From contig NIVC01004768.1 in the NCBI GenBank assembly GCA_002269645.1, positions 1 through 35,501 of the forward strand: a stretch of DNA of 35,501 nucleotides, given 5' to 3'. Positions 12 through 35,501 of the stretch are shown here, in pieces; the stretch's first letter is position 1; the number at the start of each line of letters is the position of its first letter. This DNA comes from Macrostomum lignano (Eukaryota). Below the pieces are notes generated by a model. It was not told where the DNA came from. It searched no databases and saw only the letters and a program-made list of their open reading frames with translations. A program made the translations under genes and the position numbers.

Positions 12-105
12 TTTATTATTGTTGCAATAATTCTAAGACACCTACTTTACGAGGCGTAAGTAGTCTATAAAGCGCATTTTTTCATTCACCGGAAACACGT
101 TTATT
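12..105 (-). terminator. Two candidate polyadenylation signals (AATAAA on the minus strand at 100-105 and 12-17) for the minus-strand NP[IL][TL]G-repeat gene
   Basis: TTTATT at 12-17 and 100-105 on the plus strand, downstream of the candidate terminal exon. Confidence 0.4.
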
Positions 106-169
106 GCCAGATTTATATCGCCACTCGTTGAGCTTCTCAGAAATTGAGTAGCTGCTGCAGTTCTTTCGG

Positions 170-189
170 TCAGCGGTTCGAAGCGGCAT
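170..189 (-). CDS. Candidate terminal coding exon of the minus-strand NP[IL][TL]G-repeat gene (…DAASNR*)
   Basis: CTAAT branch-like motif and TGTAG acceptor; phase 1 matches the donor of exon 740-844. An alternative acceptor near 250 would give DSGYKCTVTVN*, so the end is unresolved. Confidence 0.3.
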
Positions 190-290
190 CTACAGTGTAT
201 GCGTGTTAATCGAAAATTAGTTGACGGTAACAGTACACTTGTATCCTGAATCTGCCATGTACATGTATTTTTCGAAAAACTTGTGCCCCA

Positions 291-695
291 AAATCCAAAA
301 TCCAAATCCTGAATCCCAAACCCTAAATCCCAAATCCTAAATCGCAAATCCTGAATCCCAAATCCTGAATCCCAAATCCTGAATCCTAAATTCTCAATCC
401 CAAATCCAAAATCCCAAATCCTTAATTCCAAATAATGAATCCCAGATACTGACTCTCAAATCCTAACCCTAAATCCCAAACCCTAAATCCAAAATCCTGA
501 ATTTCAAATCCCAAATCCTGAATCCCAAATCCTGAATCCCAAATCCCAAATCCTAAATCCCAAATCCTGAATCCCAAATCCTGAATCCTGAATCCCAAAT
601 CCTGAATCCTGAATCCCAAATCCAAATCCTAAATCCCAAATCCTAAATCCCAAATCCTGAATCCCAAATCCTAAATCCCAAATCCTTAATCCCTA
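291..695. repeat. Intronic minisatellite, ~14-bp unit AATCCCAAATCCTG built from 7-bp subunits
   Basis: Tandem array read directly; explains ORFs 42-431 (N-terminal part) and 422-625. Confidence 0.95.
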
Positions 696-739: not shown

Positions 740-844
740 CGCTCTCTGTCCGCCTCCCAGAGTTTGTTGTCTTCATCTCGTGATTGATTTCATAGCTGGA
801 AACTCCGTCTCCGGTCAGCGGGTTGGCCCTGCTGTGTTGCCGCT
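740..844 (-). CDS. Coding exon of NP[IL][TL]G-repeat gene: (E)RQHSRANPLTGDGVSSYEINHEMKTTNSGRRTES
   Basis: CTCAG acceptor, G|GTACGT donor, 105 nt, phase 1/1, open frame; joining to the upstream exon recreates the QQER motif also seen in exon 4408-4536. Confidence 0.6.
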
Positions 845-1029
845 CTGAGGGTCAGCCGCCAGTTGTATTTGACTCATGAAATCGACTCGCGTCTTCGATC
901 GTGTTTCTCGTGACTTTTATTTATTGTACATTTTGTGTATTGATCAATCTCAACCCCTCACCATTCACCCGCTGAATATTTATTGTCAGAAAATTTAAAT
1001 TCGCGCCAAGGCAAGGTCAGAGGGCGAAA

Positions 1030-1700
1030 TCAGGCAATCGCAACCCGATTCATCAACCAAACCCCAAACTCTCAGCCAATCGCAACCCTCATCAACCGAA
1101 CCCCAAACTCTCTCAGCCAATCGCAACCCCTCATCAACCGATCCCCAAATTCTCAACCAATCGCAACCAAATTTATCACCCAAACCCCAAACTCTCAGCC
1201 AATGGCAACCCTTCACCAACCAAACTGCAAACTATCAGCCAATTGCAACCCTTCATCAACCAAACCCCAAACTCTCTCAGCCAATCGCAACCCTTCACGA
1301 ACAAAACCCTCAGCCAATCGCAACCCAATTCAACAACCAAACCCAAAGTCCCAACAAATCGCAATCCTTCATCAACCAAACCCAAAACTCTCAGCCAATC
1401 GCAACCCCTCATTAACCGAACTCCAAACTCTATGCCAATCGCAACCCCTCATTGTAGTGCTCATGCGAGCCCAATTTATATGTACATCGGCCTTGCGTAC
1501 AATTCATGCACTTCAAGTGCGGCGATTCTCCACCCCCCACTCTGGTGGCGTGATTTTATTCCATAGTCTGAAAATAAATAAATATCGATCAGCCCACCTA
1601 GCAGGGCTTCACCTTTCGTCTCAGCACACTCCGGCTCTTCTTACTATAGCCATTACACTTATCAACCAGACCTAAACTCCCAGCCAATCGCAACCCCTCC
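1030..1700. repeat. Intronic minisatellite, ~40-42-bp unit CTCAGCCAATCGCAACCCCTCATCAACCGAACCCCAAACT (main array 1030-1450, stray copy 1660-1700)
   Basis: Tandem array read directly; explains ORFs 983-1675, 995-1219, 1176-1412 and 1243-1566. Confidence 0.9.
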
Positions 1701-1889
1701 AATCTCACCATTGGTCAGCGGCCTCTGCCTGTCAGCATATCCGTATATCGGATCCCACTCAACTCCAAAATCGCCACTCCCAGATATGATGTCTCTATGA
1801 GCTGAAATGGGAAATTAGTTGCTGCGCAAATTTGTTCTTTTTCGTTTTTTTCTCTGCACCTGCCCAACCCCGTCCCCCTGAAAACACAC

Positions 1890-1982
1890 CTTGTTGGATC
1901 CGTGTCTTCCCAGGCCGCCCGTTGGGCCGCAGATCTTCGGGATAATCCGCAGAGCCGCCACTCAGATTCAGCGGGCTGTCAG
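1890..1982 (-). CDS. Coding exon of NP[IL][TL]G-repeat gene: (S)DSPLNLSGGSADYPEDLRPNGRPGKTRIQQ
   Basis: Pyrimidine-rich acceptor ...CCCTCTCCGACTCGCAG, donor AAG|GTGTGT, 93 nt, phase 1/1, open frame. Confidence 0.65.
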
Positions 1983-2099
1983 CTGCGAGTCGGAGAGGGT
2001 GGATAAAATTATGGGTTTCACTGGCCCATTCTCAATGCTCTTGAATTTATGGGAACTCTAAGTAGAGATTTTAGATACTTTTTTGAGTAGCTCTCTTGG

Positions 2100-2610
2100 G
2101 AAACCGCAAATGGGATCTTCGGTAACCAACAGATGGCATCTTCGGTAAGCAACAGATGGCATCTTCGGTAAGCAACAGATGGGATCTTTTGAAACTACAG
2201 ATGGAATCTTTGGAAACAACAGATGGGATCTGCGGAAGCTACAGATCGAATCTGCGGGAACTACAGATGGGATCTTTGGAAACAACAGATGGGATCTGCG
2301 GAAGCTACAGATAGAATCTGCGGAAACTACATATGGGATCTTTGGAAACCACAGATGGGATCTGCGGAAGCTACAGATAGAATCTGCGGGAACTACAGAT
2401 GGAGTCTTCGGAAACCGCAAACGGGATCTTTGGAAACCACAGATGGGATCTTCGGTAACCAACAGATGGGATCTATGGAAACTACAGATGGGATCTTCGG
2501 TAACCAACAGATGGGATCTTTGGAAACTACAGATTGGATCTGCGGAAGCTACAGATAGAATCTGCGGAAACTACAGATGGGATCTTTGGAAACCACAGAT
2601 GGGATCTTGG
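2100..2610. repeat. Intronic minisatellite, 22-bp unit (ACAGATGGGATCTTTGGAAACT family) with a 66-bp three-unit higher-order repeat
   Basis: Tandem array read directly; the 22-aa periodicity of ORF 2179-2640 reflects the 66-bp period. Confidence 0.9.
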
Positions 2611-2657
2611 AATCCCCAAATTTGGGAACCGGCAAAATGACCCCTCGCCTGACTCAC

Positions 2658-2741
2658 AGTCCTTCCTTTTCGAATCCACCCGAGAGAACAGCTTCACCTC
2701 GGCTCCAAGATTTCCCTCTCCCAGAATAGGATTCCGATCGT
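2658..2741 (-). CDS. Coding exon of NP[IL][TL]G-repeat gene: (D)DRNPILGEGNLGAEVKLFSRVDSKRKD
   Basis: Acceptor TTCTTCAACTTGCAG, donor T|GTGAGT, 84 nt, phase 1/1, open frame. Confidence 0.75.
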
Positions 2742-2916
2742 CTGCAAGTTGAAGAAATGTTTGGTTACCTCTTTCAGTTGACAATTGGAAATTTTAGGTT
2801 GAAGCATTCAAAATTTTAGCAGATGAAGCCATAAGAGCTTGGGCAATCAAAAACACCCTTGCCTCATACTACTAAGTAAGTAGCTTAAATGTTTTACTTG
2901 AATTTCTTTCAAAAGT

Positions 2917-4273
2917 AGACAGGGGGCTAGCAGGGGACAACAGGGGGCTAGCAGGGGACAACAGGGGGCTAGCAGGGGACAACAGGGAGCTAGCAAGGGA
3001 CAACAGGGGGCTAGCAGGGGACAGGGGGGCTAGCATGGGACAACAGGGAGCTAGCAAGGGACAGAGGGCTAACAGGGGACAGGGGCTAGCAAGGGACAGG
3101 AAGCTAGCAGGGACAACAACAGAGGGCTAGCAAGGGACAACAGGGGGCTAGCAAGGGACAACAGAGGGCTAGCGGTGGACAGGGGGGCTAGCAGGGGACA
3201 GGGGGGGCTAGCAGGGGACAACAGGGGGCTAGCAGGGGACAACAGGGGGCTAGCAGGGGACAGGGGGGGGCTAGCAGGGGACAGGGGGGGGGCTAGCAGG
3301 GGACAGGGTGGGCTAGCAGGGGACAGGGGCTAGCGGTGGACAGGGGGCTAGCAGGGGACAGGGGGCTAGCAGGGGACAGGGGCTAGCGGTGGACAGGGGG
3401 CTAGCAGGGGACAGGGGGCTAGCAGGGGACAGGGGGCTAGCAGGGAACAGGGGGCTAGCAGGGGACAACAGGGGGCTAGCAGGGGACAGGGGGCTAGCAG
3501 GGAACAGGGGCTAGCAGGGGACAACAGGGGGCTAGCAGGGGACAGGGGGCTAGCAGGGAACAGGGGCTAGCAGGGGACAACAGGGGGCTAGCAGGGGACA
3601 GGGGGGCTAGCAGGGGACAGGGGGGGGGGCTAGCAGGGGACAGGGTGGGCTAGCAGGGGACAGGGGCTAGCGGTGGACAGGGGGCTAGCAGGGGACAGGG
3701 GGCTAGCAGGGGACAGGGGGCTAGCAGGGAACAGGGGGCTAGCAGGGGACAACAGGGGGCTAGCAGGGGACAGGGGGCTAGCAGGGAACAGGGGCTAGCA
3801 GGGGACAACAGGGGGCTAGCAGGGGACAGGGGGCTAGCAGGGAACAGGGGCTAGCAGGGGACAACAGGGGGCTAGCAGGGGACAGGGGGCTAGCAGGGAA
3901 CAGGGGCTAGCAGGGGACAACAGGGGGCTAGCAGGGGACAGGGGGCTAGCAGGGGACAGGGGGCTAGCAGGGGACAACAGGGGGCTAGCAGGGGACAACA
4001 GGGGCTAGCAGGGGACAGGGGGCTAGCAGGGGACAGGGGGCTAGCAGGGGACAACAGGGGCTAGCAGGGGACAGGGGGCTAGCAGGGGACGGGGGCTAGC
4101 AGGGGACAACAGGGGGCTAGCAGGGGACAAGGGGCTAGCAGGGGACAACAGGGGGCTAGCAGGGGACAGGGGCTAGCGGGACAGGGGGCTAGCAGGGGAG
4201 CAGGGGGGGGGCTAGCAGGGGACAGGGGGCTAGCAGGGGACAACAGTGGGCTAGCAGGGGACAGGAGGGGGGC
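2917..4273. repeat. Intronic G-rich minisatellite, 18/21-bp unit GGGGGCTAGCAGGGGACA(ACA)
   Basis: Tandem array of ~1.35 kb read directly. Confidence 0.97.
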
Positions 4274-4407
4274 AATGAGTAGAAAATAAAAAGCAAGGAA
4301 ACGAGTCAGTCAGTTGAAGAAAACATTGAAACTACATAAAACTGCAGTGTCGCAGAAGTGAGAATTTCTCTCAGCATATTTTATTGTATTATCGCCCGCG
4401 CGCTCAC

Positions 4408-4536
4408 CCCGCTCTCGAGTGGCCCTTTTTGTCCGCTCCTGCTGATAGCCAAGTGTCAAACCGTTTTCCTCAGAAGGAGTCGCTGTCGCTTTCTTGTTGG
4501 TTAGGCCGGTGATGGGATTCCGATCCTGATCGATGG
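4408..4536 (-). CDS. Coding exon of NP[IL][TL]G-repeat gene: IDQDRNPITGLTNKKATATPSEENGLTLGYQQERTKRATRER
   Basis: Acceptor ...TTAAACTCTGCAG after a pyrimidine tract, donor G|GTGAGC, 129 nt, phase 1/1, open frame; DRNPITG matches DRNPILG in the next exon. Confidence 0.75.
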
Positions 4537-5549
4537 CTGCAGAGTTTAACGAGTAAAGGAATTAAAGAGAACTCTTGCTAATAAATATGAAAATGGGGGA
4601 AAGACACATCCACATTGTAAATGCATATTTAATCTTTAATATTTAGCTTTCGTCAAAAGTTAGTCCAGTTTTAGTATATATTAGAGCTGCATAAGTAATA
4701 TTAATTACTATATGAAGCGGCTGTTTCTTATAATTAAACGCAATAAAAGACAAATGATTTAATTTACCTCGAGATCGGTTCATTTTCAATATCAGCGCGA
4801 TGATGGTTGTAAATGAAAAATTTACGAAGTATAGAACTTTTATACTGTATGGGGTCTTTTACAATTCTCTAAAACTGACACCTAGTAGTCTAGAAATTCT
4901 TATTTTATAGAGTTGAACCTCTAGCTCGTATATAAAGTATACACTTGGAAATAGTTCGTTTTTTTACAAAAATGTGCCGCTCTCTCGATTAATATTGGCT
5001 CACAATTGGTTAGAGGTGAGAAAGGAGAAGTGTGAAAAAAAGCCTCATGCGGAGCACAGGGGGGGGGGGCGGCAGCAGTTGGAAAACTTTAACAGTGTGG
5101 CTTTGAGAGTGAGCTTCGCGGGAAACAGCTGGAGAGCAGGCTCTTACATGTACATGCGGTAATAGTGGTCTAGTGAAGGTACATGTTAGTTGGAGGAAGT
5201 GGAGACTGCATGGGGAAACAACTAAATTATATGAGCTGCTACAGGCTTGGTATAATTGCTAGCTGCAATCGTGTCATTGAGTATAGTGAGTATAAAACTT
5301 TGAGCTCAGCTTTTCAGAATGTATATGTACATGTAAATACGCGCATGTAATACATGCAGATTTTGCTTTAAGAATTAAACATATTTATATGGCATGTTGA
5401 GTGCATTTTCTTCCTAAAATTTTAAATTAATACACAGATTTTAGATTGTGTACATAAGTTCGTTCGGACATGTACATATATTTAGCCGCCTATTTTTAGT
5501 TCGACAGCATTAATAACCTCAGATGCTTTTACGTACATCAAATCACCGG

Positions 5550-5606: not shown

Positions 5607-7341
5607 GAATACGCGTTCAGCGTCACAGGGCGCGCTTCAAAGCCAGGTCGCGAATGAATGCCACGCCGCCGGCCGAATCCGGGGCGCCGGCGTCAGCCAG
5701 CAGGCAGTCGACGAAACGCCGAGTGCGCGTCTGCCCCCGCCGGTAGGGTGCCTGCAGCGTTAGCAGCAGCACCTCCTGCACCGGCTGTGGGCAGTACGAC
5801 TCGGCGCGGATGATGTGGCCTGCCAGCTGGAGTCGCCGACGGCGCAACAGGTCGCTTGGACGGACCAGGCCGGCGCGGCGATATAAAGCCGCGCTGGTCA
5901 CTCGCTCGTAGCCGATCCTGAAGGCGGCGCGCAGCAGGCCAGCATGCGCCGCGTCAACTTGTTGTTCGAGCGACTCCGTCAGCGTCCAGGTCTCGACGTT
6001 GTACAGCAGGTCGGTCTCGATTACCGCCTGGAACAACGCTGCCTTCTGGCGGTCAGGTACCTGCAGGACTGCAGGACTGCCCTCACAGAACGAAAGGCAG
6101 CCCAGGCAAGCCCGCGGCGAAGCCGCAAATCCTCGCGGACGCCGGGAACCAGACTGCCGAGGTAGACGAACTGCTGACAACGCGGAAACTGTGTCGCCTG
6201 TCCATCAGCACCTCGACACAAAATCGCAGCCTTGATGTCGTCCGGCACGCAGAGCACGACGGTCCTCTGCGTGTTGACCACCAGGCCGACACTCGCCGCA
6301 ACAGCAACTAGCTTGTCCAGTTGTCGCTGGGCGCCATCGACAGTTGAGGACAGCAGGGCGGGGTCGTCGGCGTAGCCAAGCAGGCTGAGCCGACTCTCCG
6401 GTTGACGTCGACCCACGCGTCGCCGCAACAGAAAGCCGTCGTCGTTGGTAGGAAGAGTGGTCCGCAGCACCCAGTCAAGCATCAGAACGAACAGGAACGG
6501 CGCAGGCGTATCTTCTTGAAGCACTCCGGAGGATGTCTCAAAGAAGTCCGATAGGCCGTCCGGTGTTGAAACAGCAGCTTTCGGATCACGGTACATCGCC
6601 ATGATGGCAGAAATCAGCTACTCTGGCACGTTGTACGCACGGAGCATCTTTGGGAGCACAGATCTGGCGACCGAGTCGAATGCCTTGTTGAAATCTATGA
6701 AGATAACAATCAGGATCGACTGGCGTATCCGTACTTCCTCAATTACTCGCCGAAGAGCCAGGATCTGCGTCACTGTGCCGCGATGGGGCCGGAAGCCGTT
6801 CTGCTCAGGACGCAGGTACTGATTCAGCACGGGCTGCAACCACGATAGCAGAATCCGGTTGAATAACTTCGCAGCGCAGGACTGAAGGCAGATACCTCGA
6901 TGCTCCTCAAGCCTCGTGGTGCTCGGCTTCTTAGGAACTGCGACGATATGTGCGCCGTGATCCATTTGTTGGGTGCCTCCTCACCGAAGAGTACGCGATT
7001 CATCACTCTGGCGACCTCACTGGCCACATAGTGGATGCACAGCGCCTCAATGGGCACCTCGTCCGGATTCAGCGCTTTCCCGCCCGGTGACTGTTGGGCG
7101 AGCCTCTCACAACGTTGGGTGTGCTGACTGGTACTAGGCTGAAGCTCTCTTCTGCCGGCAACGGCACCTCCGGCGACAGCGTCAGACTGTCTGGCAGCGG
7201 ATGTGGCGGCGTGTTGACAATGGCGGCGAAGAACTCACGCAGCTCGTTCCTGCGTTCGTCCGCGGTGTCGCCTGTCAGGTTTAGCGGAAAGCTTTCGCCC
7301 CGTCAAAGCATTGATAGCCGACCAGGCCACGCGGCTCTTAC
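5551..7341 (-). mobile_element. 5'-truncated, inactivated non-LTR retrotransposon (RTE-type LINE), reverse transcriptase and C-terminal region
   Basis: Frame pieces 6824-7057, 6618-6965, 6021-6602 and 5623-6180 carry RT motifs QNGFRPHRG, FIDFNKAFDSV, GVLQEDTPAPFLF (decayed from GVLQGDTLAP), YADD, FVYLGS and the RTE-like C-terminus RRRLQLAGHIIR with no CCHC finger; frameshifts; simple-repeat tail; no endonuclease part. Confidence 0.92.
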
Positions 7342-13506: not shown

Positions 13507-13842
13507 CTGAAAGGTATCATACACTTCACAGTCAAAAATCTGTATTCTCCTTATTTTGGGATGTAAAAAATGCACAGGCACCCTGTTGTTTGTATTGTCT
13601 GTATTATTTCCTGGGCGTATCATCTCAGTGTCCACAAGCTGAAAAAGCCTGGAGAAGCCCCCAAGAAATGCTCTAAAGCTGTTTTCAGAGTTTTTTTTCA
13701 AATTTGTCCCAATATCAGCAATGCCTACCTTTTTGTGCGAACCATATTTTCTGTACAGTTTTATACAGTTGTTAAAAATTATACTTTTCTATCTGGAAAA
13801 AGTCGAAAAAAATTGCGCAGGAGCCCTGTTGTTTGCACTTTT

Positions 13843-14366
13843 GACTTACTTGACTTGGCTGCAGGAAACAGCGAGGAGGCGTTGCCGCCCATTTCGCTAG
13901 CCCCTGGCGACCACGGGCAGCTAGTGCTGCGGTGTCGCGCAAGGAGTTCCGGTGGCGCCGGTGTCCGCAGCGCGGTCCCCCTCCGGAGAGTCCAGGAGGT
14001 GGACTGTCGCTCGCCCGGTAGCCCTTAGGTAGCGGACGAGCTGGCAGAGATTCTCGGGCCTGAAAACGTCGGAGAGGTCCGGGTTTGGGCCGAGGTAGAT
14101 GAGCCTGTCCTGGGTTAAGGCGGGGCATTCACAGATGAAGTGCTCCGCATTCTGGACACCGGAGAGGCAGAATGGGCATTCCTCACTGCGGATTTTTCCC
14201 TGGAGGTGACGATGCCTGGCAAAGCAGCCATGACCCGAGAGGGCCATGGTAACCGCCCTGATGTCCCTGCGGTTGAGTCCAAGCAGGGCCCTGCGCAGTG
14301 CGGAGGAAGGACAGGGGACAGCCGCGCGGGATTGCCGGCAGTCAGGGGCGTTAGCCCACCTCTCCC
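13843..14366 (-). mobile_element. 5'-truncated non-LTR retrotransposon 3' end (LOA/R1-like, I superfamily), 524 bp
   Basis: ORF end [12 protein letters not shown]…CPFC…EHFICEC (C-terminal CCHC zinc knuckle); short AAGTC-type tail; perfect 13-bp TSD TGTTTGCACTTTT at 13830-13842 and 14367-14379. Confidence 0.88.
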
Positions 14367-14554
14367 TGTTTGCACTTTTACTTTCTGTTAACATTTGGCG
14401 CTAGGATTTTTAAACATAAAACTATGCACACGTGACTGTCGGCTTCAGTTCATGCTGGCCATCCCGATAATACAGGAAGTCCATTCTGTCTGTCTGGTTC
14501 CTAGTACCAGTCCTTTAAGTGACCGCTAGATCTGCTCGCTTGCTTTACTACTAG

Positions 14555-16895
14555 TCAGCTGTTGCTGTGCCGTCACGGCTAAGCGGCATTGGGCAATATG
14601 CAAAAGAATCTTTTACGACAGAACCGGGTCTGTGGGCTCGAATAAGATGCTTCCTTTCAGTTCTAGCCCTCGCTCTACTGTAAGGACTGAAAACATTTTG
14701 CTTTTGAAATCTGCTGTTCTTTTCAGTCGACTTGTCTGTAGAATCCCTTGGCATTTTTGTCCAGGCCTACTATATGAAAGGTCCCGCGATAGTTTCGCGT
14801 CCAGTGATGCTGTGACGTTTTATTTCTTTGTTGCACTATTAGATTCGATTTTCTACCTTTTTGCCTTCTTTGCTATCTGATTCGTGAGAACATCGCTATT
14901 ATCCATATGGAAGATATTGCCTACTCATTTATCTTGAGTAGCTATCAAAGTCATCCCATTATATGTGCCTATATGGGCATTGCTTTTTAGCGCTCACAAA
15001 TTACTTGCCTCTAATCGCCATCGATTACCACCTCCACTAGCCTCCATTATCATTCATTGACATTATACTAACTAATCATCCACTACATTTGTCTGTAAGA
15101 TTCGTTTCTAATCGAAGCATTTACTAGATTCTCTGGTTCTCTGATCTGCTCTGGTCTATAATGATCCACTAGATTGGTCTCTAATGATCCACTAGATTGG
15201 TCTCTAATGATATACTAGATTCGTCTCTAATGATATACTAGATTCGTCTCTAATGATATACTAGATTTGTCTCTAATGATCCACTAGATTCATCTCTAAT
15301 GATCCACTAGATTAATCTCTAACGATCCACTAGATTAATCTCCAATGATCCACTAGATTCGTCTCTAATGATCCACTAGATTTGTCTCTAATGATCCACT
15401 AGATTCATCTTTAATGATCCACTAGATTAATCTCTAACGATCCACTAGATTCGTCTCTAATGATATACTAGATTTGTTTCTAATGATCCACTAGATTAAT
15501 CTCTAATGATCCACTAGATTCGTCTCTAATGATCCACTATATTAATATCTAATAACCCACTAGATTAATTTCTACGAGCGTAATGATCCACTAGATTAAT
15601 CTCTAATGAGCCACTATATTAATATATAATGATCCACTAGATTCGTCTCTAATTATCCACTAGATTCGTCTCTAATTATCCACTAGATTCGTCTCTAATG
15701 ATCCACTAGATTGGTTTCTAATTATTCACCAGATTAGTCTCTAATTATCCACTAGATTTGTCTCTAATGATCCACTAGATTAATCTCTAATGATCCGCTA
15801 GATTAATCTCTAATGGTCCACTATATTAATATATAATGATCCACTAGATTCGTCTCTAATTATCCACTAGATTCGTCTCTAATTATCCACTAGATTAATC
15901 TCTAATTATCCACTAGATTCGTCTCTAATAATCCGCTAGATTAATCTCTAATGGTCCACTATATTAATATATAATGATCCACTAGATTCGTCTCTAATTA
16001 TCCACTAGATTCGTCTCTAATAATCCACTAGATTAATCTCTAATTATCCACTAGATTCGTCTCTAATAATCCGCTAGATTAATCTCTAATGGTCCACTAT
16101 ATTAATATATAATGATCCACTAGATTCGTCTCTAATTATCCACTAGATTCGTCTCTAATTATCCACTAGATTCGTCTCTAATAATCCACTAGATTAATCT
16201 CTAATAATCCACTAGATTAATCTCTAATTATCCACTAGATTCGTCTCTAATGATTCACTAGATTCGTCTCTAATAATCCACTAGATTTGTCTCTAATTAT
16301 CCACTAGATTCGTCTCTAATTATCCACTAGATTCGTCTCTAATTATCCACTAGATTAATCTCTAATTATCCACTAGATTAATCTCTAATTATCCACTAGA
16401 TTAATCTCTAATCTTTCTGTAGATTAATATTTAATCGTTCACTAGATTCGTCTCTAATCCTGCACTAGATTAGATCTGGTCTTTGAATCGCCCAGGAAAA
16501 TCACCGAATCTAAAAAATTCCCATCTTCAAGTTGACGTGAATCGCATTAATTATAGGCTTCAAGGCAATATTATGCGATTTATAGTTTATTAAAGTTATG
16601 CCATATTTGGTATAGTTAATTACAGTTTTACGCTGGATTAGGGATTTATATAGTTTAGAAACTGCATAGGAGCGTACTGGTGTGCCAATTTCGGCACCAA
16701 GTTTAGTCTACTCTAATTAGACCAAGCTTATTTCCTCAGTTGGAATGCCTCTGGAAGGCGGCTTCTTTGGGACATTCAGATTTTTAGGGCCTAGATGTGT
16801 GCTTTTTCTCTTGAATTTATTTATATTTGTTTATAGGCGACCAGTCTGGCGAGTCGAAGGCCCTATATAATAAATTGCGCAGCTTTGAGCTCTGA
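14555..16895 (+). CDS. Putative unannotated multi-exon gene (candidate exons 14555-14679, from 14727, 16740-16796, 16837-16895); product unknown
   Basis: Phase-compatible 47-nt (GTAAGG…TTTTCAG) and 40-nt (GTGTGC…TTTATAG) introns join open frames SGIGQYAKESFTTEPGLWARIRCFLSVLALALLRLVCRIPW and GMPLEGGFFGTFRFLGPRCDQSGESKALYNKLRSFEL*; middle exons unresolved. Confidence 0.3.
15159..16472. repeat. Minisatellite, 23-bp unit AATGATCCACTAGATTCGTCTCT
   Basis: Tandem array of ~1.3 kb read directly. Confidence 0.97.
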
Positions 16896-18800: not shown

Positions 18801-19730
18801 ATGCGGCCGCTTCTGCTGCCGCTGCTACTATCGCTACTGCTGCTGCCTGTCCGGCCGACTGACGCCGCCGCCACACCGGCCACCTGTCAGTCCGTGTCGG
18901 CCGTTTACGCAGCCAAGAATCTGGACGTACTGCAGGTGCGATACCAGGCCTCGGGCAGTCACCTGGCCGTCTGTCCGGCCCGGCCGGGTCCCTCCTGTTG
19001 CAGTCGGGAGATGGAAACTGCTCTAGAGAATCGGGCCAAGACTGACATGTACCAGGATCTGTACCAGCATCTGGTGCCTCAGAGCACCTCGTTGGCCTCT
19101 CTGCTGACTAGCTTTCAGTCTCTGGCCCTACAGATGGTTAACAATTCCTACACGAAACTGGACACGAGTTTCAAGAGCATCTACGGCTACTCTTATATTG
19201 AGAATAAGCAGCCGTTTCTGCAATTCTTCGAAGGCTTGCGAGCCTACTTGTCCGGCGGACCGGATACTGTGGCCGGAGTTGCCAAGGCCCTGTTCGAAAG
19301 CATCTCCTCTCGGGTGTACGTACTAGTCATGACCAACTATGACATTGATGAGGCCTATCTGACCTGCGTCCGCAGCCGCCTGGACCAGCTAAAGCCTTTA
19401 GGCAACATGCCCGAGCGTATTAGCCAAGAACTTATCCGGGCATTCGTGCCCGCTCGCCGATTCCTGGCCGGGTTGGCCGCGCTGCAGGACGCCGTTCAGA
19501 TGTCCCCGGCCACTCCGCTGCCCGCTCAGTGCCAGAAATCGCAGTTGCGCTCTCGATATTGCGCCTGGTGCGACGGGATTACAAATCTGCAGCCGTGCTT
19601 TGAGCTGTGCTCAGCCTCTATGGCCGACTGTCTCACCCAGTTGGACTCGCTGGCCGAACCATTCGACCAGCTTTTGGACGAGTTGGTCAAGCTGTCCAAT
19701 AAGATCCGGGGTCCAAATAACCTCTACCAG
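18801..19730 (+). CDS. Glypican, coding exon 1 (310 codons; GPC1/2/4/6-dally-like type)
   Basis: Signal peptide MRPLLLPLLLSLLLLP; glypican motifs GSHLAVCP, SCCSREME, YCAWC, PCFELC; cysteines 1-11 of the 14-Cys core; donor CAG|GTAATG, phase 0. Confidence 0.93.
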
Positions 19731-19818
19731 GTAATGGGTTGCTGTAGGCTATCTAGACTTACGGTTCTGCAACGGGGTGTTGTATTGAGTCAATTGTATT
19801 GAGTTTCTATGGTGTATT

Positions 19819-20430
19819 AAGATTCTGGATTGTCAAGATTCTAGGGTGTGAAGATTCTTGGGTGTGAAGATTCTTGGTTGTGAAGATTCTGGGTTGTGAA
19901 GATTCTTGGGTGTGAAGATTCTGGGTTGTAAAGATTCTTGGGTGTGAAGATTCTAGGTTATGAAGATTCTGGGTTGTGAGGATTCTAGGTTGTGAAGATT
20001 CTTGGGTGTGAAGATTCTTGGGTGTGAATATTCTGGGTTGTGAAGATTCTGGGTTATGAAGATTCTTTGGCGTGAAGATTCTGGGGTTGTGAAGATTCTG
20101 AGTTAGGAAGATTGTAGGTTGTGAAGATTCTGAGTTAGAAAGATTGTAGGTTGTGATGATTCTGGGTTGTGAAGATTCAAGATTGTGAAGATCCTGGGTT
20201 GTGAAGATTCTGGGTTGTGAGGATTCTAGGTTGTGAAGATTCTGGGTTGTGAAGATTCTAGGCTGTGAAGATTCTGGGTTCTGAAGTTTCTTAGGTGTGA
20301 AGATTCTGGGTTGTGAAGACCTTGGGGTGTGAAGATTCTGAGTTAGGAAGATTGTAGGTCGTGAAGATTGTGGGTTGTAAAGATTCTTAGTTGTGGAGGA
20401 GATTCAGGGTGTGAAAATTCTGGGGTGTAA
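19819..20430. repeat. Glypican intron minisatellite, 16-17-bp unit GATTCTGGGTTGTGAA
   Basis: Tandem array read directly. Confidence 0.95.
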
Positions 20431-20542
20431 AAAATATAATGTAAAGATTGCGGAGGTTTCAGCCGCTTATTTATATAAGCTTCGCGGACACAGTCGTCAA
20501 CTTTAAAATTTGATTATTTTTTGTCCAAAAACCAACGCGCAG

Positions 20543-22296
20543 GTGCTGGAAAACCTGGGCCTGCGCATCAGCGCCGGCATCATGGACATGCAGGAGCGCA
20601 AGGACCACATCCAGACTGAGGTGGCCAAACTGTGCGGCCCGCCCAAGCTTAAAGCCAATGGCTCGCCTTCCATCGTGCCGCCGCCGCTGCCTCGGCCCGG
20701 CCGAGGTCGCCGACGTCGCCGCCGCGCCTCCATGTTCGGCTGGAACTACCGCAACAGCGATGATGCGCCAGGGCCCAGCAGCCAAGCCCAGGAGCGGCTG
20801 GACGAGCTGGGCCTCACCGCTAAGCGAAGCCTGCCCGCCAGCCGGAGCCTGTTCAGGCCCAGCAGCCTGGCCAAGCGCTTTTGCAAGGCCGACCCGGCCC
20901 CGCCTGGACGCTGCTGGAACGGCACCGACTCCGCCGCTGGCTACACGGCGCCAGCGTCGACGGTAGCGTCGCCAGTAGAGCCGCCTACACTGGCCGTGTC
21001 TCAGCGGGTGGCCAATCTGCGCGCCGCTCACCGGCTTCTAGCCGAGCTGCCTAAAAGCGAAAGCTTTGCCGGCTTCGTCGAGCAGCCGCTGGATCCAACG
21101 CTTAGGGGCCTGCTTAATAAACGCGCCAGAGTGGCGTCTAGCATTGGCAGTTCCGGCCCCAGCCTGACAGACGCTTTGCCTATCGGCGCCGCTACTAGTG
21201 GCGCCGGCCTCGGTTCCGGCAGCGGCGCCGCTCCTCCGCCCGTGCCGGTGGCCCCTCGGCCTCGCCCGCCCGCCGGCGGATTTCCGCGCCGGCTTTCAAC
21301 TCTGCCTCCGCTGACCCGGCCGCCGCCTGCTGGCGTAGTTGATTCTTGGCGTCCGTTGCCGCCAATTCGGCCGCGCCCAGACACGGCCGGGTCCGGCGAT
21401 GCCGCCGGTCCGCCGCCAAGGCCAGGGGTCTGGGTACCCCCGCCTGCAGCCACCCGGGAGCCACCGGCGCCGCCTGCAACCCGCTGGCCACCGCTGCCGC
21501 CTGCGACCCGCTGGCCACCGCTGCCGCCTGCGACCCGTTGGCCACCGCTGCCGCCTGCGACCCGTTGGCCACCGCTGCCGCCCCCGCAGCCGCCCGTTGT
21601 TGACGGAAGCTCCACAGTTGCTCCGCTGCCTTGGCGGCCGCCACCCGTTAACCCAGGCCTCGGCTCCGGCGACGAAGAGCGGCCGCCACCCCGTCCGGGG
21701 TGTTCGTCCCGGCTCTGCCCACCGCCAGCTCTTCCTCTTCATCCACATCCGGCCCACTCGTGCCCGGCGGCGTCTCTTCGGGCGACGGCGAGCCAACCGG
21801 GCCTCCGCCGCCGCCTCGGCCGGTTCCGTCCGGCTGGCCGTGGCCGCCTATCGTCGACGTCGGCGGCGGCGAGACCTCCGGCGACGGTGAATTGCCGCCC
21901 CCAGTGGCGCCGCCTCAGCCACCGTCACCGCCAACCGAGTCCTGGTGGACGCCCCGGCCGCCGGTACAGCCGCAGCCGCCCCGGAAGCCGGCCACCCGCT
22001 GGCCGCCGCAGCCGCCCCGCCAGCCGCCCCGCCAGCCGCCCACCCGCTGGCCGCCGGTCATCCCCGGCCCGCCGCCCGGCGGTGACCTGTGGCTGCCCAA
22101 AGAGCCGGACGATCAAGGCGGAGCGGAGCGCGGCCGCGGCGAAGGCTCCATCCACGGCCCGATGAAGATGACCAGCGCCAAGCGGGCCTGCCCGCCAGGC
22201 TCCCCGGCCTGTCCGGCCTGCCGCCCGCTGGCCGCCTCGGCCGGGACTCTCCTGCTGCTGGCCGGTCTGCAGCGGCTGCTTATGCTGCTGCGCTGA
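20543..22296 (+). CDS. Glypican, coding exon 2 (with a 1-nt frameshift at 21697-21700): end of the Cys core, polybasic site, long Pro/Trp-rich stalk with Ser-Gly sites, GPI-type signal
   Basis: CGCGCAG acceptor in phase 0; LRISAGIMDMQ…LCG, FCK and CWNG give cysteines 12-14; restoring one G joins ORF 20510-22165 to ORF 21700-22296, which ends in the hydrophobic LAASAGTLLLLAGLQRLLMLLR*; corrected protein 894 aa. Confidence 0.85.
21469..21585 (+). repeat. Coding 27-bp tandem repeat in the glypican stalk (PPATRWPPL x4)
   Basis: CCGCCTGCGACCCGCTGGCCACCGCTG units, in frame. Confidence 0.9.
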
Positions 22297-31179: not shown

Positions 31180-31444
31180 ATGGCCTCCGAGTCAGCTGTG
31201 TCGGACACTGTAGAGCTGGCCGAGCTCGGCGAACGGCCGATGCGGCGTCGGACACTGTCCGAGGACTCGCAGTCGGGCTACTCGGCCAAGACCTGGAACT
31301 CGGACAGCGATCAATTCGAGCAGAATTTCAAAGATCGGGGCGTCTGGAGCAGCAAATTTGACTTCTTCTTTGCCTGCCTCGGCTACGGAGTTGGGATGGC
31401 CAACTTCCTGCGCTTCCCCGGGCTCGTGTTCAAGAATGGCGGCG
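31180..31444 (+). CDS. SLC6 / sodium:neurotransmitter symporter family transporter, coding exon 1 (N-terminus, TM1)
   Basis: DRGVWSSKFDFFFACLGYGVGMANFLRFPGLVFKNGG; donor G|GTGCGT, phase 1. Confidence 0.93.
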
Positions 31445-31451
31445 GTGCGTG

Positions 31452-31637
31452 CGGGTGGGATCCCGCTGCCCCTAGGGTGGGATCCCGCTGCCCCTAGGGT
31501 GGGATCCCGCTGCCCCTAGAGTGGGATCCCGTTGCCCCTAGGGTGGGATCCCGCTGCCCTAGGGTGGGATCCCGCTGCCCCTAGAGTGGGATCCCGTTGC
31601 CCCTAGGGTGGGATCCCGCTGCCCCTAGGGTGGGATT
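31452..31637. repeat. SLC6 intron 1 minisatellite A, 22-bp unit GGGTGGGATCCCGCTGCCCCTA
   Basis: Tandem array starting 7 nt after the donor. Confidence 0.93.
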
Positions 31638-31689
31638 CCAGTAGCCACCACTAGTGGAATCATCTGTCATTTTGGGATCAACTGTCACT

Positions 31690-32188
31690 TGAGATTAACT
31701 GTCACCTGGAATCACCTGGATTACCAGTAATAACTTATCACCCGAGACTACCTATGATAACCTGTCACCCTGGATTACCTGTGATAACTCTAACCTGTCA
31801 CCTGGGATCACCTGTCACCTGGGATCACCTGTCACCTGGGATCACCTGTCACCTGGATCACCTGTCACCTGGGATCACCTGTCACCTGGGATCACCTGTC
31901 ACCTGGGATCACCTGTCACCTGGGATCACCTGTCACCTGGGATCACCTGTCACCTGGGATCACCTGTCACCTGGGATCACCTGTCACCTGGGATCACCTG
32001 TCACCTGGGATCACCTGGGATCACCTGTCACCTGGAATCACCTGGAATCACATGTCACCTGGAATCACCTGGGATCACCTGGGATCACCTGTCACCTGGG
32101 ATCACCTGGGATCACCTGTCACCTGGAATCACCTGGAATCACCTGTCATCTGGAATCACCTGGGATCACCTGTCACCTGGGATCACCA
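31690..32188. repeat. SLC6 intron 1 minisatellite B, 17-bp unit GGGATCACCTGTCACCT
   Basis: Tandem array read directly. Confidence 0.93.
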
Positions 32189-32246
32189 ATGAATTCTGGC
32201 AACCTAAATCATAAAAAAGCATTCCCAACTGCCCTCACTCGAACAG

Positions 32247-32378
32247 GTGTATTCTTCATACCGTATTTGCTGATGGTATTCCTGTGCGTGATCCCCATAG
32301 TCTACCTGGAGATGATTATTGGCCAGTTCTCATCTGCGTCGACTCTGCAGTTCGGGCGAGTCATCCCGCTGTTCCAGG
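32247..32378 (+). CDS. SLC6 coding exon 2 (TM2)
   Basis: (G)VFFIPYLLMVFLCVIPIVYLEMIIGQFSSASTLQFGRVIPLFQ; AACAG acceptor, G|GTGAGG donor, phase 1/1. Confidence 0.93.
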
Positions 32379-32452
32379 GTGAGGTTCTGCGCCTGATGGC
32401 TTTCTTCTAATTGTAGAAGAGGATAAATTATGAATTTTAGTTTTTTTCGCAG

Positions 32453-32596
32453 GAATTGGCTGGGCAATGTTCATCGTGACCTTCTTTACCATAATATACT
32501 ATCAAATTGTGCTGTCCTGGGTTGTGTACTACCTGTTCAGCTCTTTGACGGCCCAATTGCCTTTTGGACACTGCAATAATACCTGGAATACGCCTG
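32453..32596 (+). CDS. SLC6 coding exon 3 (TM3, start of EL2)
   Basis: (G)IGWAMFIVTFFTIIYYQIVLSWVVYYLFSSLTAQLPFGHCNNTWNTP; TTTCGCAG acceptor, G|GTGAGT donor. Confidence 0.93.
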
Positions 32597-33575
32597 GTGA
32601 GTGTGGCTCATCAACAGGGGTGAGGGCGGCTCAGCAACAGGGGTGAGTGTGGCTCGTCAACAGGGGTGAGGGTGGCCTCATCAACAGGGGTGAGGGTGGC
32701 CTCATCAACAGGGGTGAGGGTGGCCTCATCAACAGGGGTGAGTGTGGCTCGTCAACAGGGGTGAGGGTGGCCTCATCAACAGGGTGAGGGTGGCCTCATC
32801 AACAGGGATGAGGGTGGCCTCATCAACAGGGGTGAGGGTGGCTCATCAACAGGGGTGAGGGTGGCCTCATCAACAGGGGTGAGGGTGGCCTCATCAACAG
32901 GGGTGAGGGTGGCCTCATCAACAGGGGTGAGGGTGGCCTCATCAACAAGGGTGAGGGTGGCCTCATCAACAGGGGTGAGGGTGGCTCGTCAACAGGGGTG
33001 AGGGCGGCTCGTCAACAGGGGTGAGGGTGGCCTTATTAACAGGGGTGAGGGTGGCCTTATTAACAGGGGTGAGGGTGGCCTCATCAACAGGGATGAGGGT
33101 GGCCTCGTCAACAGGGGTGAGGGTGGCCTTATTAACAGGGGTGAGGGTGGCCTCATCAACAGGGGTGAGGGTGGCCTCATCAACAGGGGTGAGGGTGGCC
33201 TCATCAACAGGGATGAGGGTGGCCTCATCAACAGGGGTGAGGGTGGCTCATCAACAGGGGTGAGGGCGGCTCGTCAACAGGGGTGAGGGTGGCCTTATTA
33301 ACAGGGGTGAGGGTGGCCTCATCAACAGGGGTGAGGGTGGCTCATCAACAGGGGTGAGGGTGGCTCATCAACAGGGGTGAGGGTGGCTCATCAACAGGGG
33401 TGAGGGCGGCTCATCAACAGGGTGAGGGCGGCTCATCAACAGGGGTGAGGGCGGCTCATCAACAGTGGTGAGGGTGGCTCGTCAACAGGGGTGAGGGCGG
33501 CTCATCAACAGGGGTGAGGGCGGCTCAGAAACAGGGGTGAGGGCGGCTCATCAACAGGGGTGAGGGCGGCTCGTC
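32597..33575. repeat. SLC6 intron 3 minisatellite, 24-bp unit GGCCTCATCAACAGGGGTGAGGGT
   Basis: Tandem array whose first unit overlaps the authentic donor. Confidence 0.96.
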
Positions 33576-33710
33576 ACAGTTAGGGGTTAGTGACGAGTAG
33601 AACTGTTTTCAAGGTCACACACAGTAGCCACAGCGATATATTCGTACAATCAAGATGTTGATAAGTCCTTGTAATTAAAAAATTATTTTAAAAATTTCTT
33701 AACATCGCAG

Positions 33711-33834
33711 GCTGCAGAACGATTTCCCAGTGGAACCTAACAGTTAGTGACGACAAGCACACCATCGCATTTAACAATGGAAGCATCAACGTCACGGATG
33801 TGACAGCTAGAACACCAAGCGAGGAATACTTTAG
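33711..33834 (+). CDS. SLC6 coding exon 4 (EL2)
   Basis: (G)CRTISQWNLTVSDDKHTIAFNNGSINVTDVTARTPSEEYF; second EL2 cysteine, N-glycosylation sequons, PSEEYF motif; AG|GTGAGC donor, phase 2. Confidence 0.9.
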
Positions 33835-33913
33835 GTGAGCATTGCTTGTTTGGATACTAAAGGGTTTCCCCGTTGGATTTTCACGGCTAGTTTTTCCAAC
33901 TGTAATGACTATC

Positions 33914-34360
33914 CAGGTGGATTCCCCTGGCTGGATTCCCCCGGTTTGGATTTCCCCCGGTTGGATTTCCCCCGGTTGGATTTCCCTCGATTGGATTTCC
34001 CCCGGTTGGATTTCCCCGGTTGGATTTCCTCCGGTTAGATTTCCCTGTGTGGGTCTGGTTTTCTCAAAGTGTGGTTTTCCCCCAGTTGGATTTCCCCAGG
34101 TTGGATTTCCCCAGGCTGGATTTCCCCGTTGGATTTCCCTCGTTGAATTTCCACCGATTAGATTTACCCCGTGTGGGTCTCACCGGTTGTATTTCCCCCA
34201 GTTGGATTCCCCCAGTTGGATTTTCCCTTGTGGGTTTCCCTCACTGGGTTTCCCAACTGGGTTTTCCCACTGGGTTTCCCCACTGGGTTTTCCCACTGGG
34301 TTTCCCTCACTGGGTTTCCCAACTGGGTTTTCCCACTGGGTTTCCCCACTGGGTTTCCCC
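33914..34360. repeat. SLC6 intron 4 minisatellites: ~14-15-bp TTGGATTTCCCCGG (33914-34140) and ~13-14-bp CACTGGGTTTCCC (34231-34360)
   Basis: Two related tandem arrays read directly. Confidence 0.88.
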
Positions 34361-34481
34361 TCTGTGTTTTCCCAGCTGTGTTGCCCCGCTTGAATTTCTG
34401 TATTTTAAATGCTAAATTTCTCACACTGATTTTCGCCCTAGATTTCCCAGCTAAAGTTACCTATGTACATCCCTATTTCAG

Positions 34482-34614
34482 GTTCTTTGTTCTGGCCGAA
34501 TCGGGCGACATCGGCATCCTAGGCGAGATCAACTGGCGACTGGCGCTGAGTCTGCTGTTCGCCTGGGCCTGCGTCTTCGTCGTGCTGTTTCAGAGCGTCA
34601 CTTCGCCGAAGAAG
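34482..34614 (+). CDS. SLC6 coding exon 5 (TM4)
   Basis: (R)FFVLAESGDIGILGEINWRLALSLLFAWACVFVVLFQSVTSPKK; ATTTCAG acceptor, AAG|GTGAGC donor. Confidence 0.92.
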
Positions 34615-34705
34615 GTGAGCAACTTTAAATATGATCATATGGGGTGGGATCACCCAAGCCCGAGACCGTGCATCAAGCTAGGGTCACCGTTACCGCAAAC
34701 CGCAG

Positions 34706-34840
34706 GTAATCTACGTGACCGTGGTGGTGCCCTGGCTGCTAATGATAGTGTTCCTGATTGCCACCGCCATGCTGCCGGATCGTTCCATCGGGTTCCGGTA
34801 TTTTCTGTCGCCAAACTGGGACAAGATTAGCCAGGCTTCG
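34706..34840 (+). CDS. SLC6 coding exon 6 (TM5)
   Basis: VIYVTVVVPWLLMIVFLIATAMLPDRSIGFRYFLSPNWDKISQAS; CGCAG acceptor, TCG|GTGAGT donor, phase 0/0. Confidence 0.92.
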
Positions 34841-34845
34841 GTGAG

Positions 34846-35212
<367 letters not shown>

Positions 35213-35257
35213 GTCGAATTTTACTGCAATACAAGCCAGTCTGCATTATCCATCCAG

Positions 35258-35362
35258 ACTTGGACGGACGCATCGTCACAGGCGTTTTACTCAATGGGCC
35301 CCTGCTTTGGCGGCATCATGACTCTGTCCAGCTACAACAAATTCAAGTACAATATTCAAAAG
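35258..35362 (+). CDS. SLC6 coding exon 7 (TM6); gene continues beyond the window
   Basis: TWTDASSQAFYSMGPCFGGIMTLSSYNKFKYNIQK; ATCCAG acceptor, AAG|GTGTGT donor. Confidence 0.9.
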
Positions 35363-35501
35363 GTGTGTTTGTGCCTTAAATTCTGCTATAATTATTCGGT
35401 TGAAAGGAAAGTTCTCGCCAATTCTTGAAAAATATAGTGCAAGGAAAATTTTGAAGTTCTACGAGCGTAAGAACCTTCCATTGCTCGATTGTAAAGAAGG
35501 A

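Follow-up and report, generated by a model that had tools for sequence, protein, structure and literature searches.

The window analysed here is a stretch of 35,501 nucleotides (nt) from the flatworm Macrostomum lignano (GenBank assembly GCA_002269645.1, contig NIVC01004768.1, positions 1 to 35,501), which carries at its left end part of a minus-strand gene for a protein of short repeats with Asn-Pro-x-x-Gly (NPxxG) turns, followed by retrotransposon fragments, a glypican gene and exons that presumably encode a neurotransmitter transporter. On the minus strand, a real protein-coding gene very probably begins with its candidate promoter near position 4909 and extends with its first seven exons down to position 1; it belongs to a small flatworm family related to Jupiter/JPT, which are microtubule-associated proteins. 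Our overall best explanation, to which we give a probability of about 0.6, is that this Jupiter/JPT-related gene encodes a protein whose NPxxG turns bind tubulin, perhaps in the microtubule lumen. The features of the gene, in the order of its reading, are as follows.

4909-4903, minus strand: TATAAAA box some 120 nt upstream of the ATG; by its consensus match only, a candidate core promoter
4844-4838, minus strand: second TATAAAA, read from the sequence
4783-4768, minus strand: exon 1, 16 nt, ATGAACCGATCTCGAG followed by gtaaat, coding for M-N-R-S-R and the first base of an Ala codon, phase-1 donor
4536-4408, minus strand: exon 2, 129 nt, phase 1-1, (A)IDQDRNPITGLTNKKATATPSEENGLTLGYQQERTKRATRER, with NPITG at 4519-4505
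2741-2658, minus strand: exon 3, 84 nt, phase 1-1, DDRNPILGEGNLGAEVKLFSRVDSKRKD, with NPILG at 2733-2719
1982-1890, minus strand: exon 4, 93 nt, phase 1-1, SDSPLNLSGGSADYPEDLRPNGRPGKTRIQQ, with the degenerate motif SPLNL at 1977-1963
1801-1709, minus strand: exon 4b, 93 nt, phase 1-1, AHRDIISGSGDFGVEWDPIYGYADRQRPLTN, with the sites ttcag/.../gtgagatt
844-740, minus strand: exon 5, 105 nt, phase 1-1, ERQHSRANPLTGDGVSSYEINHEMKTTNSGRRTES, with NPLTG at 824-810
189-90, minus strand: exon 6, another repeat unit, 100 nt in its present form, with the donor TTTCCG/gtgaat in phase 1

All seven exons in the window have canonical sites (cag/.../gtgagc, cag/.../gtgagt, cag/.../gtgtgt and cag/.../gtacgt for exons 2, 3, 4 and 5, respectively), every intron is in phase 1, and the lengths of the internal exons are all multiples of 3 (129, 84, 93, 93 and 105 nt; exon 6 would have 102 nt with its gaps allowed for). 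Each repeat exon carries one motif a few codons past the acceptor, so that one exon is one repeat unit. In this way, the phase-1 introns and the exon lengths indicate that exon duplication gave rise to the units, whose gain or skipping leaves the frame open. Exon 1 joins exon 2 (at 4536) exactly in phase 1 to give MNRSRAIDQDRNPITG; the nearest in-frame stop lies 25 codons upstream of the ATG with no earlier ATG, and NRSRAI in the joined peptide aligns with NRPRRI of A0A1I8HD70, a M. lignano protein discussed below. At the other end, the phase-1 donor of exon 6 indicates that the gene continues past window position 1, and its C-terminus lies outside the window.

The original prediction had spliced exons 2, 3, 4 and 5 into a 136-residue peptide with three NP[IL][TL]G motifs, two of them preceded by QQER. 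These four exons do have canonical AG/GT sites and a single open frame that yields exactly the quoted peptide, and NPITG, NPILG and NPLTG are the sole matches to NP[ILVM][TLS]G in the six frames of the whole window. While the exon coordinates and the other junctions stood, the junction 1890/844 did not, because it skips the 93-nt exon 4b at 1801-1709 and stays open owing to the phase-1 exon structure; the ATG exon and the exon at 189-90 were also missing from the earlier model. The second QQER is a product of that junction, and the supported reading is ...RIQQ/AHRDIISG... and ...PLTN/ERQHSRANPLTG. One more exon candidate, at 1567-~1487 (DYGIKSRHQSGGWRIAALEVHELYARP), runs into TAA without a phase-compatible donor and had no tblastn match; it was dropped because A0A1I8H3K3, another M. 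lignano protein, is collinear across the exon 4b/exon 5 junction (1709/844) with no insertion.

An exhaustive profile search, a kind of check that had been proposed with the prediction, was performed against 1.84 billion proteins (E <= 0.001), using a profile from the four window-exact exon peptides only. Ten proteins were obtained, and the family was reached by this search only. Four of them are real relatives (A0A1I8I8J6, A0A1I8H3K3, A0A1I8HD70 and XP_019768966.1), in which the repeated motif is present, and the other six were rejected as unrelated repetitive proteins. A0A1I8H3K3 (405 aa, amino acids), which carries the UniProt name 'Microtubule-associated protein Jupiter', and A0A1I8HD70 (421 aa) are both M. 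lignano proteins. With the 173-aa model that comprises exons 1-5 as they stand, including 4b, BLASTP gave E = 9e-34 for A0A1I8HD70, collinear from residue 2, and E = 8e-30 for A0A1I8H3K3, with 50% identity over 118 residues. By exon, the identity to A0A1I8H3K3 and A0A1I8HD70 is 68% and 58% for exon 3, 56% and 64% for exon 4b (tblastn), and 42-47% for exon 5 when compared with the repeats of both proteins, while exon 4 aligns with 'NPLEQPENGNSEADRLRPRGRPGKASIHQ' of A0A1I8HD70 and with the equivalent stretch of A0A1I8H3K3. Each of the two paralogues has nine motifs, spaced 28-37 residues apart in the C-terminal halves.

The M. lignano NPxTG-repeat family can be delimited by collinear full-length similarity and the same order of unit types, and both were found for the window model, which is collinear with the two paralogues over its whole length at 38-50% identity. 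The order of units common to all three is RNPITGL / RDPIAGLG, RNPILG[EQ]GNLG, LRPxGRPGK, RD[IP]I[SA]GxG[DE]FGxEWDP and NPLTG...S[FY][DE]IN[HQ]E; in exon 4b the motif takes the form RDIISG, for which the paralogues have RDPI[AS]G. Like the window model, both paralogues are basic and hydrophilic and have no PPGG. They differ from it in being separate loci at 50-60% sequence divergence, and in that exon 6 of the window copy has frame-breaking gaps. A0A1I8HD70 has, in addition, 29 extra residues between the parts that resemble exon 4b and exon 5.

The composition of the exons is consistent with coding sequence. In shuffles matched to the local composition, 0.36 matches to the motif pattern were expected per window, and three on one strand within 4 kb occurred in 0 of 500 shuffles, a significance that is overstated because the pattern was defined post hoc. 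The codon-usage score, with the neighbouring glypican and SLC6 exons as the reference, was -0.06 in the proposed frame; the two alternative frames scored -0.49 and -0.70, and unique pieces of the introns -0.43 to -1.44. The GC content was 0.56 in exons versus 0.28-0.48 in introns. The prediction that the exons lie between minisatellites was borne out, since arrays identified by Tandem Repeats Finder fill the introns and account for 57% of the gene span (31% of the window).

2918-4271: minisatellite of intron 2, 18-nt unit, about 70 copies
2094-2612: intronic array, 22-nt unit
1029-1452: intronic array, 40-nt unit
291-697: intronic array, 7/14-nt unit

The 40-nt unit of the array at 1029-1452, which lies in intron 4b, contains CCAAT / ATTGG (…GGTTGCGATTGGCTGAGAG…) about ten times in tandem, so that a dense series of CCAAT-box-like sequences lies within the gene, though it is probably a mere repeat. 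About 31 tandem-repeat arrays were found in the whole window; many of them are long, fairly regular minisatellites that give rise to long spurious open reading frames (ORFs) in several frames (such as those at 15154-16473, with 57 copies of a 23-nt unit, and at 32596-33570, with 41 copies of a 24-nt unit).

Elsewhere in the window lie the following neighbours of the Jupiter-like gene.

5623-6965, 7111-7290 and 13806-14394, minus strand: fragments of a LINE-type (long interspersed nuclear element) retrotransposon, between the Jupiter-like and glypican genes
18801-22165, plus strand: glypican gene, with Pfam PF01153 on its UniRef match
31180-35501, plus strand: exons that we take, by eye, to be of the SLC6-type neurotransmitter:sodium symporter family (e.g. 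'WSSKFDFFFACLGYGVGMANFLRFP')

The LINE reverse-transcriptase domain (Pfam RVT_1 on A0A1I8I8J6) is split over at least three ORFs, and a Cys/His-rich ORF is present at 13921-14394. The introns of the SLC6-type gene are full of 22-, 17-, 24-, 15- and 13-nt minisatellites, and a (TCTA)92 microsatellite lies at 34846-35212. The first glypican exon (18801-19799) is an ORF of 333 codons with a signal peptide, and a long, GC-rich ORF rich in Pro and Arg extends over 20510-22165. A M. lignano UniRef entry is 99% identical to the glypican ORF and bears the name 'Conserved oligomeric Golgi complex subunit 7', apparently a misnomer. Within a single unbroken ORF of the window, the UniRef glypican model P0001 follows frame 3, then 2, then 3 (18936-19274, 19424-19600 and 19596-19736). 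Frame-shifting indels thus separate two M. lignano assemblies in this exon, which bears on the gaps of exon 6 described below.

The remaining M. lignano relative, A0A1I8I8J6, is a protein of 1906 aa named 'Reverse transcriptase domain-containing protein' that tracks the minus strand of the window from 21854 to 88. It contains antisense glypican ORFs, fragments of LINE reverse transcriptase and the (GTT)n stretch at 5606-5550, read as 'VVVVVVVV', and then exons 2, 3 and 6, skipping exons 1, 4, 4b and 5. Exon 2 is identical to its residues 1353-1394, exon 3 is 100% identical, and exon 6 agrees in 25 of 26 residues; past the left edge of the window it has at least four more NP[LV]TG units. A0A1I8I8J6 is therefore an automatically generated chimera, built on this locus as it stands in another assembly or haplotype. 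The gene had been predicted to be hidden, and it is indeed poorly annotated, yet not fully hidden, as this entry already holds three of its exons. Similarly, the full repeat region of the paralogues is embedded in the larger models of two cluster partners, P0012 (825 aa), which is named 'Protein kinase domain-containing', and P0013 (940 aa), named 'Integrase catalytic domain-containing'; these names are unrelated, and both may be fused models too. For the annotation of M. lignano this means that a real small gene with repeat-filled introns has been lost, three of its exons standing at the tail of a 1906-aa 'reverse transcriptase' chimera, and that it can be properly modelled from its paralogues.

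In exon 6 the frame is broken. As it stands, the phase-1 frame reads DAASNR and then TGA, and the peptide homologous to the other units is spread over three frames, with AASN, PLT and KNCSSYSISEKLNEWRYKSGNKRVSG in turn. The exon fits the single-frame AASNPLTGENCSSYSISEKLNEWRYKSGNKRVSG of A0A1I8I8J6 only if the CC at 176-175 is taken as CCC and the G at 167 as GG, after which 78 nt follow whose translation accounts for the 25 of 26 identical residues. An earlier model of the 3' end, with one missing C and a long ORF at 42..431 ('...NPLTERTAAATQFLRSS...LRLVK*', 191 aa), was rejected, as A0A1I8I8J6 requires a second gap; by this protein the true frame is KNCSSYSISEK..., with the phase-1 donor at 90. 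The two 1-nt gaps are either assembly errors or real decay.

Were they real decay, the copy would be a decaying or truncated duplicate (a pseudogene, a disabled allele or a homeologue) of a family that is itself real. We consider this unlikely, though it is the most probable of the alternatives. With the TGA after ...RRTESDAASNR, either about 179 aa would be made or nothing stable; the AATAAA at 105-100 is a possible signal for an early transcript end; and only 8 nt separate the gaps, which fall in runs as short as CC and G, unlike the classic error in long homopolymers. On the other hand, the remaining six exons, 520 nt in all, are undamaged and conserved at the level of the paralogues, the residues after the gaps are still those of the same-locus A0A1I8I8J6, and exon 6 is in a single frame there, in the other assembly. 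Additionally, frame-shifting indels between assemblies also occur in the neighbouring glypican exon, where it is the window that is intact, so indel noise between these assemblies is common in this region.

The product was predicted to be a disordered protein of short repeats, and its composition agrees with this. It has an isoelectric point of 9.6, a grand average of hydropathy of -1.05 to -1.38, no Cys or Trp, and a maximal hydropathy of 0.73 over 15 residues; no hydrophobic segment or signal peptide was detected by composition and hydropathy analysis. A neuropeptide precursor, considered for the dibasic sites with Gly, was ruled out, since there is no signal peptide or hydrophobic N-terminus. 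Judged by its sequence, the protein is basic and probably unfolded, with units of about 30-40 residues, one per exon. The units open with an Asn/Asp-Pro-x-x-Gly turn (NPITG, NPILG, RDIISG, NPLTG etc.), and the conserved positions are essentially these turns and a few residues that follow. Judged on composition and hydropathy, it shares with Jupiter/JPT proteins a small, basic, hydrophilic and apparently disordered character.

A resemblance to NPVTGEG of Drosophila Jupiter had been suggested, and the relatives lend it weight through the UniProt name of A0A1I8H3K3 and through XP_019768966.1 (LOC109543605, 169 aa) from the beetle Dendroctonus ponderosae. The latter was matched at E = 7e-4 by the profile of window exons only, and it passes the Pfam JUPITER family (PF17054) with 31.9 bits over the profile region 273-324 of 359 (curated cut-off, 27 bits). 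hhalign of the flatworm alignment against XP_019768966.1 gave a probability of 93.6% (E = 2e-7) across three units in succession. With a sequence of Drosophila Jupiter that serves as a lead and is no database record, one unit was aligned at GNPVTGEGY (probability 49%, E = 1.7e-4); this sequence itself scored 383 bits with Pfam JUPITER. NPITG or DPIAG in the flatworm proteins presumably takes the N-terminal position of VLRPPGGGS in Jupiter, by comparison with this sequence. Units of the insect Jupiter type, NP[IV]TG[EQL]G, were found in the window as NPITG, NPILGEG and NPLTGDG, with a further NPLTG once the frameshifts of exon 6 are bridged. On these sequence grounds, the gene is a Jupiter-like relative through its NPxTG repeat region, and not a member by the Pfam criterion. 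It adds a member to a family already known, though thinly characterised, rather than being a new kind of gene.

For the mechanism, the literature gives one line of evidence from the family and another from a protist protein. Direct microtubule binding has been reported for Drosophila Jupiter and JPT2 only; human JPT2 was reported to reside in the microtubule lumen, and its minimal binding element is the C-terminal LNPPGGKSSISFY, of the NPPGGKSS type (PMC12773733). AlphaFold3 places this JPT2 peptide in the paclitaxel pocket of beta-tubulin, and a C-terminal peptide of Drosophila Jupiter had related effects (PMC12773733). JPT2 is displaced by ligands of the taxane site and not by ligands of other sites (PMC12773733; JPT2 work summarised in PMC13406575). 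In CFAP213, which lies in the lumen of the central pair at the ciliary tip of Tetrahymena, cryo-electron microscopy has found two GYNPITGEY loops in the taxane pockets of neighbouring protofilaments, and its authors reported no homologues in 'higher eukaryotes' (bioRxiv 10.1101/2024.12.02.626492). The units of the window have the NP[IL][TL]G[ED]G core without flanking aromatics of the CFAP213 type, and one paralogue unit reads NPLTGEGY. Each NPxxG turn of the flatworm protein might thus serve as a short tubulin-binding motif, and a chain of 8-10 units would bind successive tubulins multivalently. Microtubule binding through the motif is somewhat favoured, by homology. The luminal taxane pocket of beta-tubulin would be the most likely site, which we propose tentatively and by analogy. 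More speculative is the idea that NP-x-x-G turns in general (NP[ILV]TG of flatworms and insects, NPPGG of JPT1/2 and GYNPITGEY of CFAP213) might be one ancient, reusable plug of the taxane pocket, of which the flatworm family would be a multivalent luminal staple.

Several results weigh against this explanation. Pfam JUPITER did not match the window protein in its 136-, 142- and 191-aa versions (E <= 10) or A0A1I8H3K3 and A0A1I8HD70 (E <= 1), and Pfam scans of the three versions returned nothing. No PPGG was found on the gene strand within the gene or in the two paralogues, which extends what had been noted for the four exons. In PDB sequence searches phmmer returned nothing, and neither a synthetic query of GYNPITGEY repeats nor two repeat profiles found a chain of CFAP213, of a microtubule inner protein or of a central-pair protein; what they matched were bacterial surface proteins, through chance occurrences of NPxTGE, and FG-like repeats. 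The spliced 136-aa peptide and the 191-aa version gave no match in word-index searches, and so no copy derived from a transcript. By sequence comparison, what connects the protein to Jupiter is a short repeated motif and a single intermediate, XP_019768966.1, and with two frame-breaking gaps in exon 6 this copy may not yield the full protein.

It is also conceivable, if improbable, that the gene is a relative of Jupiter/JPT whose NPxTG units do something other than bind tubulin, such as binding of NAADP (nicotinic acid adenine dinucleotide phosphate) with phase separation, or a nuclear role. JPT2 is also described as an NAADP-binding, phase-separating protein of endolysosomal Ca2+ signalling (PMC12803092), Drosophila Jupiter in HeLa cells gives a strong nuclear as well as microtubule signal (PMC12773733), and the flatworm proteins are without PPGGK*S, the mapped microtubule-binding element of JPT2. 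Against a role of this kind, the part shared by the flatworm proteins and Pfam JUPITER is exactly the NP[IV]TG repeat region, the loops through which CFAP213 contacts tubulin have this five-residue pattern too, and RNPITGL / RDPIAGLG presumably stands at the N-terminal position of VLRPPGGGS in Jupiter.

About equally improbable is binding to the outer surface, as by the repeats of tau or MAP2/4, in which the tubulin lattice would be matched on its outside by a repeat period of about 30 residues. The spacing of 28-37 residues in the C-terminal parts of the paralogues is near the 31-32 residues of the tau repeat, and the original description of Drosophila Jupiter has it on all microtubules. However, the PGGG of the tau, MAP2 and MAP4 repeats was not found in the model or the paralogues, which resemble them in repeat period alone, and the sole site-level data for the family (proximity labelling of JPT2, its super-resolution radius and its displacement by taxane-site ligands) favour the lumen (PMC12773733). 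That there is no gene at all, the frames and splice-like sites among the minisatellites being due to chance, has a negligible probability: the splice sites had been picked so that the frame stays open, and there was no Pfam, PDB or word-index match, but collinear homology to two independent paralogous proteins (E = 9e-34 and 8e-30) refutes it, and all exons are in phase 1-1 with frame-specific codon usage.

If NPxxG turns were such a plug of the taxane pocket, the flatworm family would be the animal counterpart of CFAP213 that the authors of that study could not find in 'higher eukaryotes'. Whether taxane pockets are bound by NPxxG in general could be asked in a simple way with its proteins. 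M. lignano is heavily ciliated and reportedly amenable to transgenesis, which makes it seem practical for such testing. The flatworm family also represents a natural variant of Jupiter/JPT, in which PPGG has been wholly replaced by NP[ILV]TG, present in 8-10 copies through duplication of phase-1 exons.

Compared with known systems, the flatworm proteins share with Jupiter, JPT1 and JPT2 (Drosophila Jupiter, human HN1 and HN1L) a small, basic and apparently disordered character and short turn motifs of Pro and Gly. As in the flatworm, insect members of Jupiter have NP[IV]TG[EQL]G units, in the Pfam profile region 273-324, and the JPT2 peptide LNPPGGKSSISFY and GNPLTGENCSS[FY] of the flatworm have a common outline of N-P-x-x-G-x-x-S-S-aromatic. 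Unlike Jupiter/JPT, the flatworm proteins have no PPGG or PPGGK*S and no Pfam match, so that the link is one of motif-level profile similarity and not of full-length alignment, and the number of NPxTG units is 8-10, compared with one or two in Drosophila Jupiter. XP_019768966.1 resembles the flatworm proteins in its unit RNPVTG[QE]G(V)SSW, which occurs four times at a spacing of about 29 residues, while it is an uncharacterised insect protein, much shorter, and without the N-terminal unit types. CFAP213 (FAP213), a microtubule inner protein of the central pair that occurs mainly in protists, is described as helical and structured with two loops, whereas the flatworm protein is an apparently disordered multi-repeat chain. 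The loops of CFAP213 and the flatworm units share the NP[IL]TG[ED] core, a resemblance that rests on the motif as printed in the CFAP213 paper and suggests a likeness of possible mechanism rather than membership.

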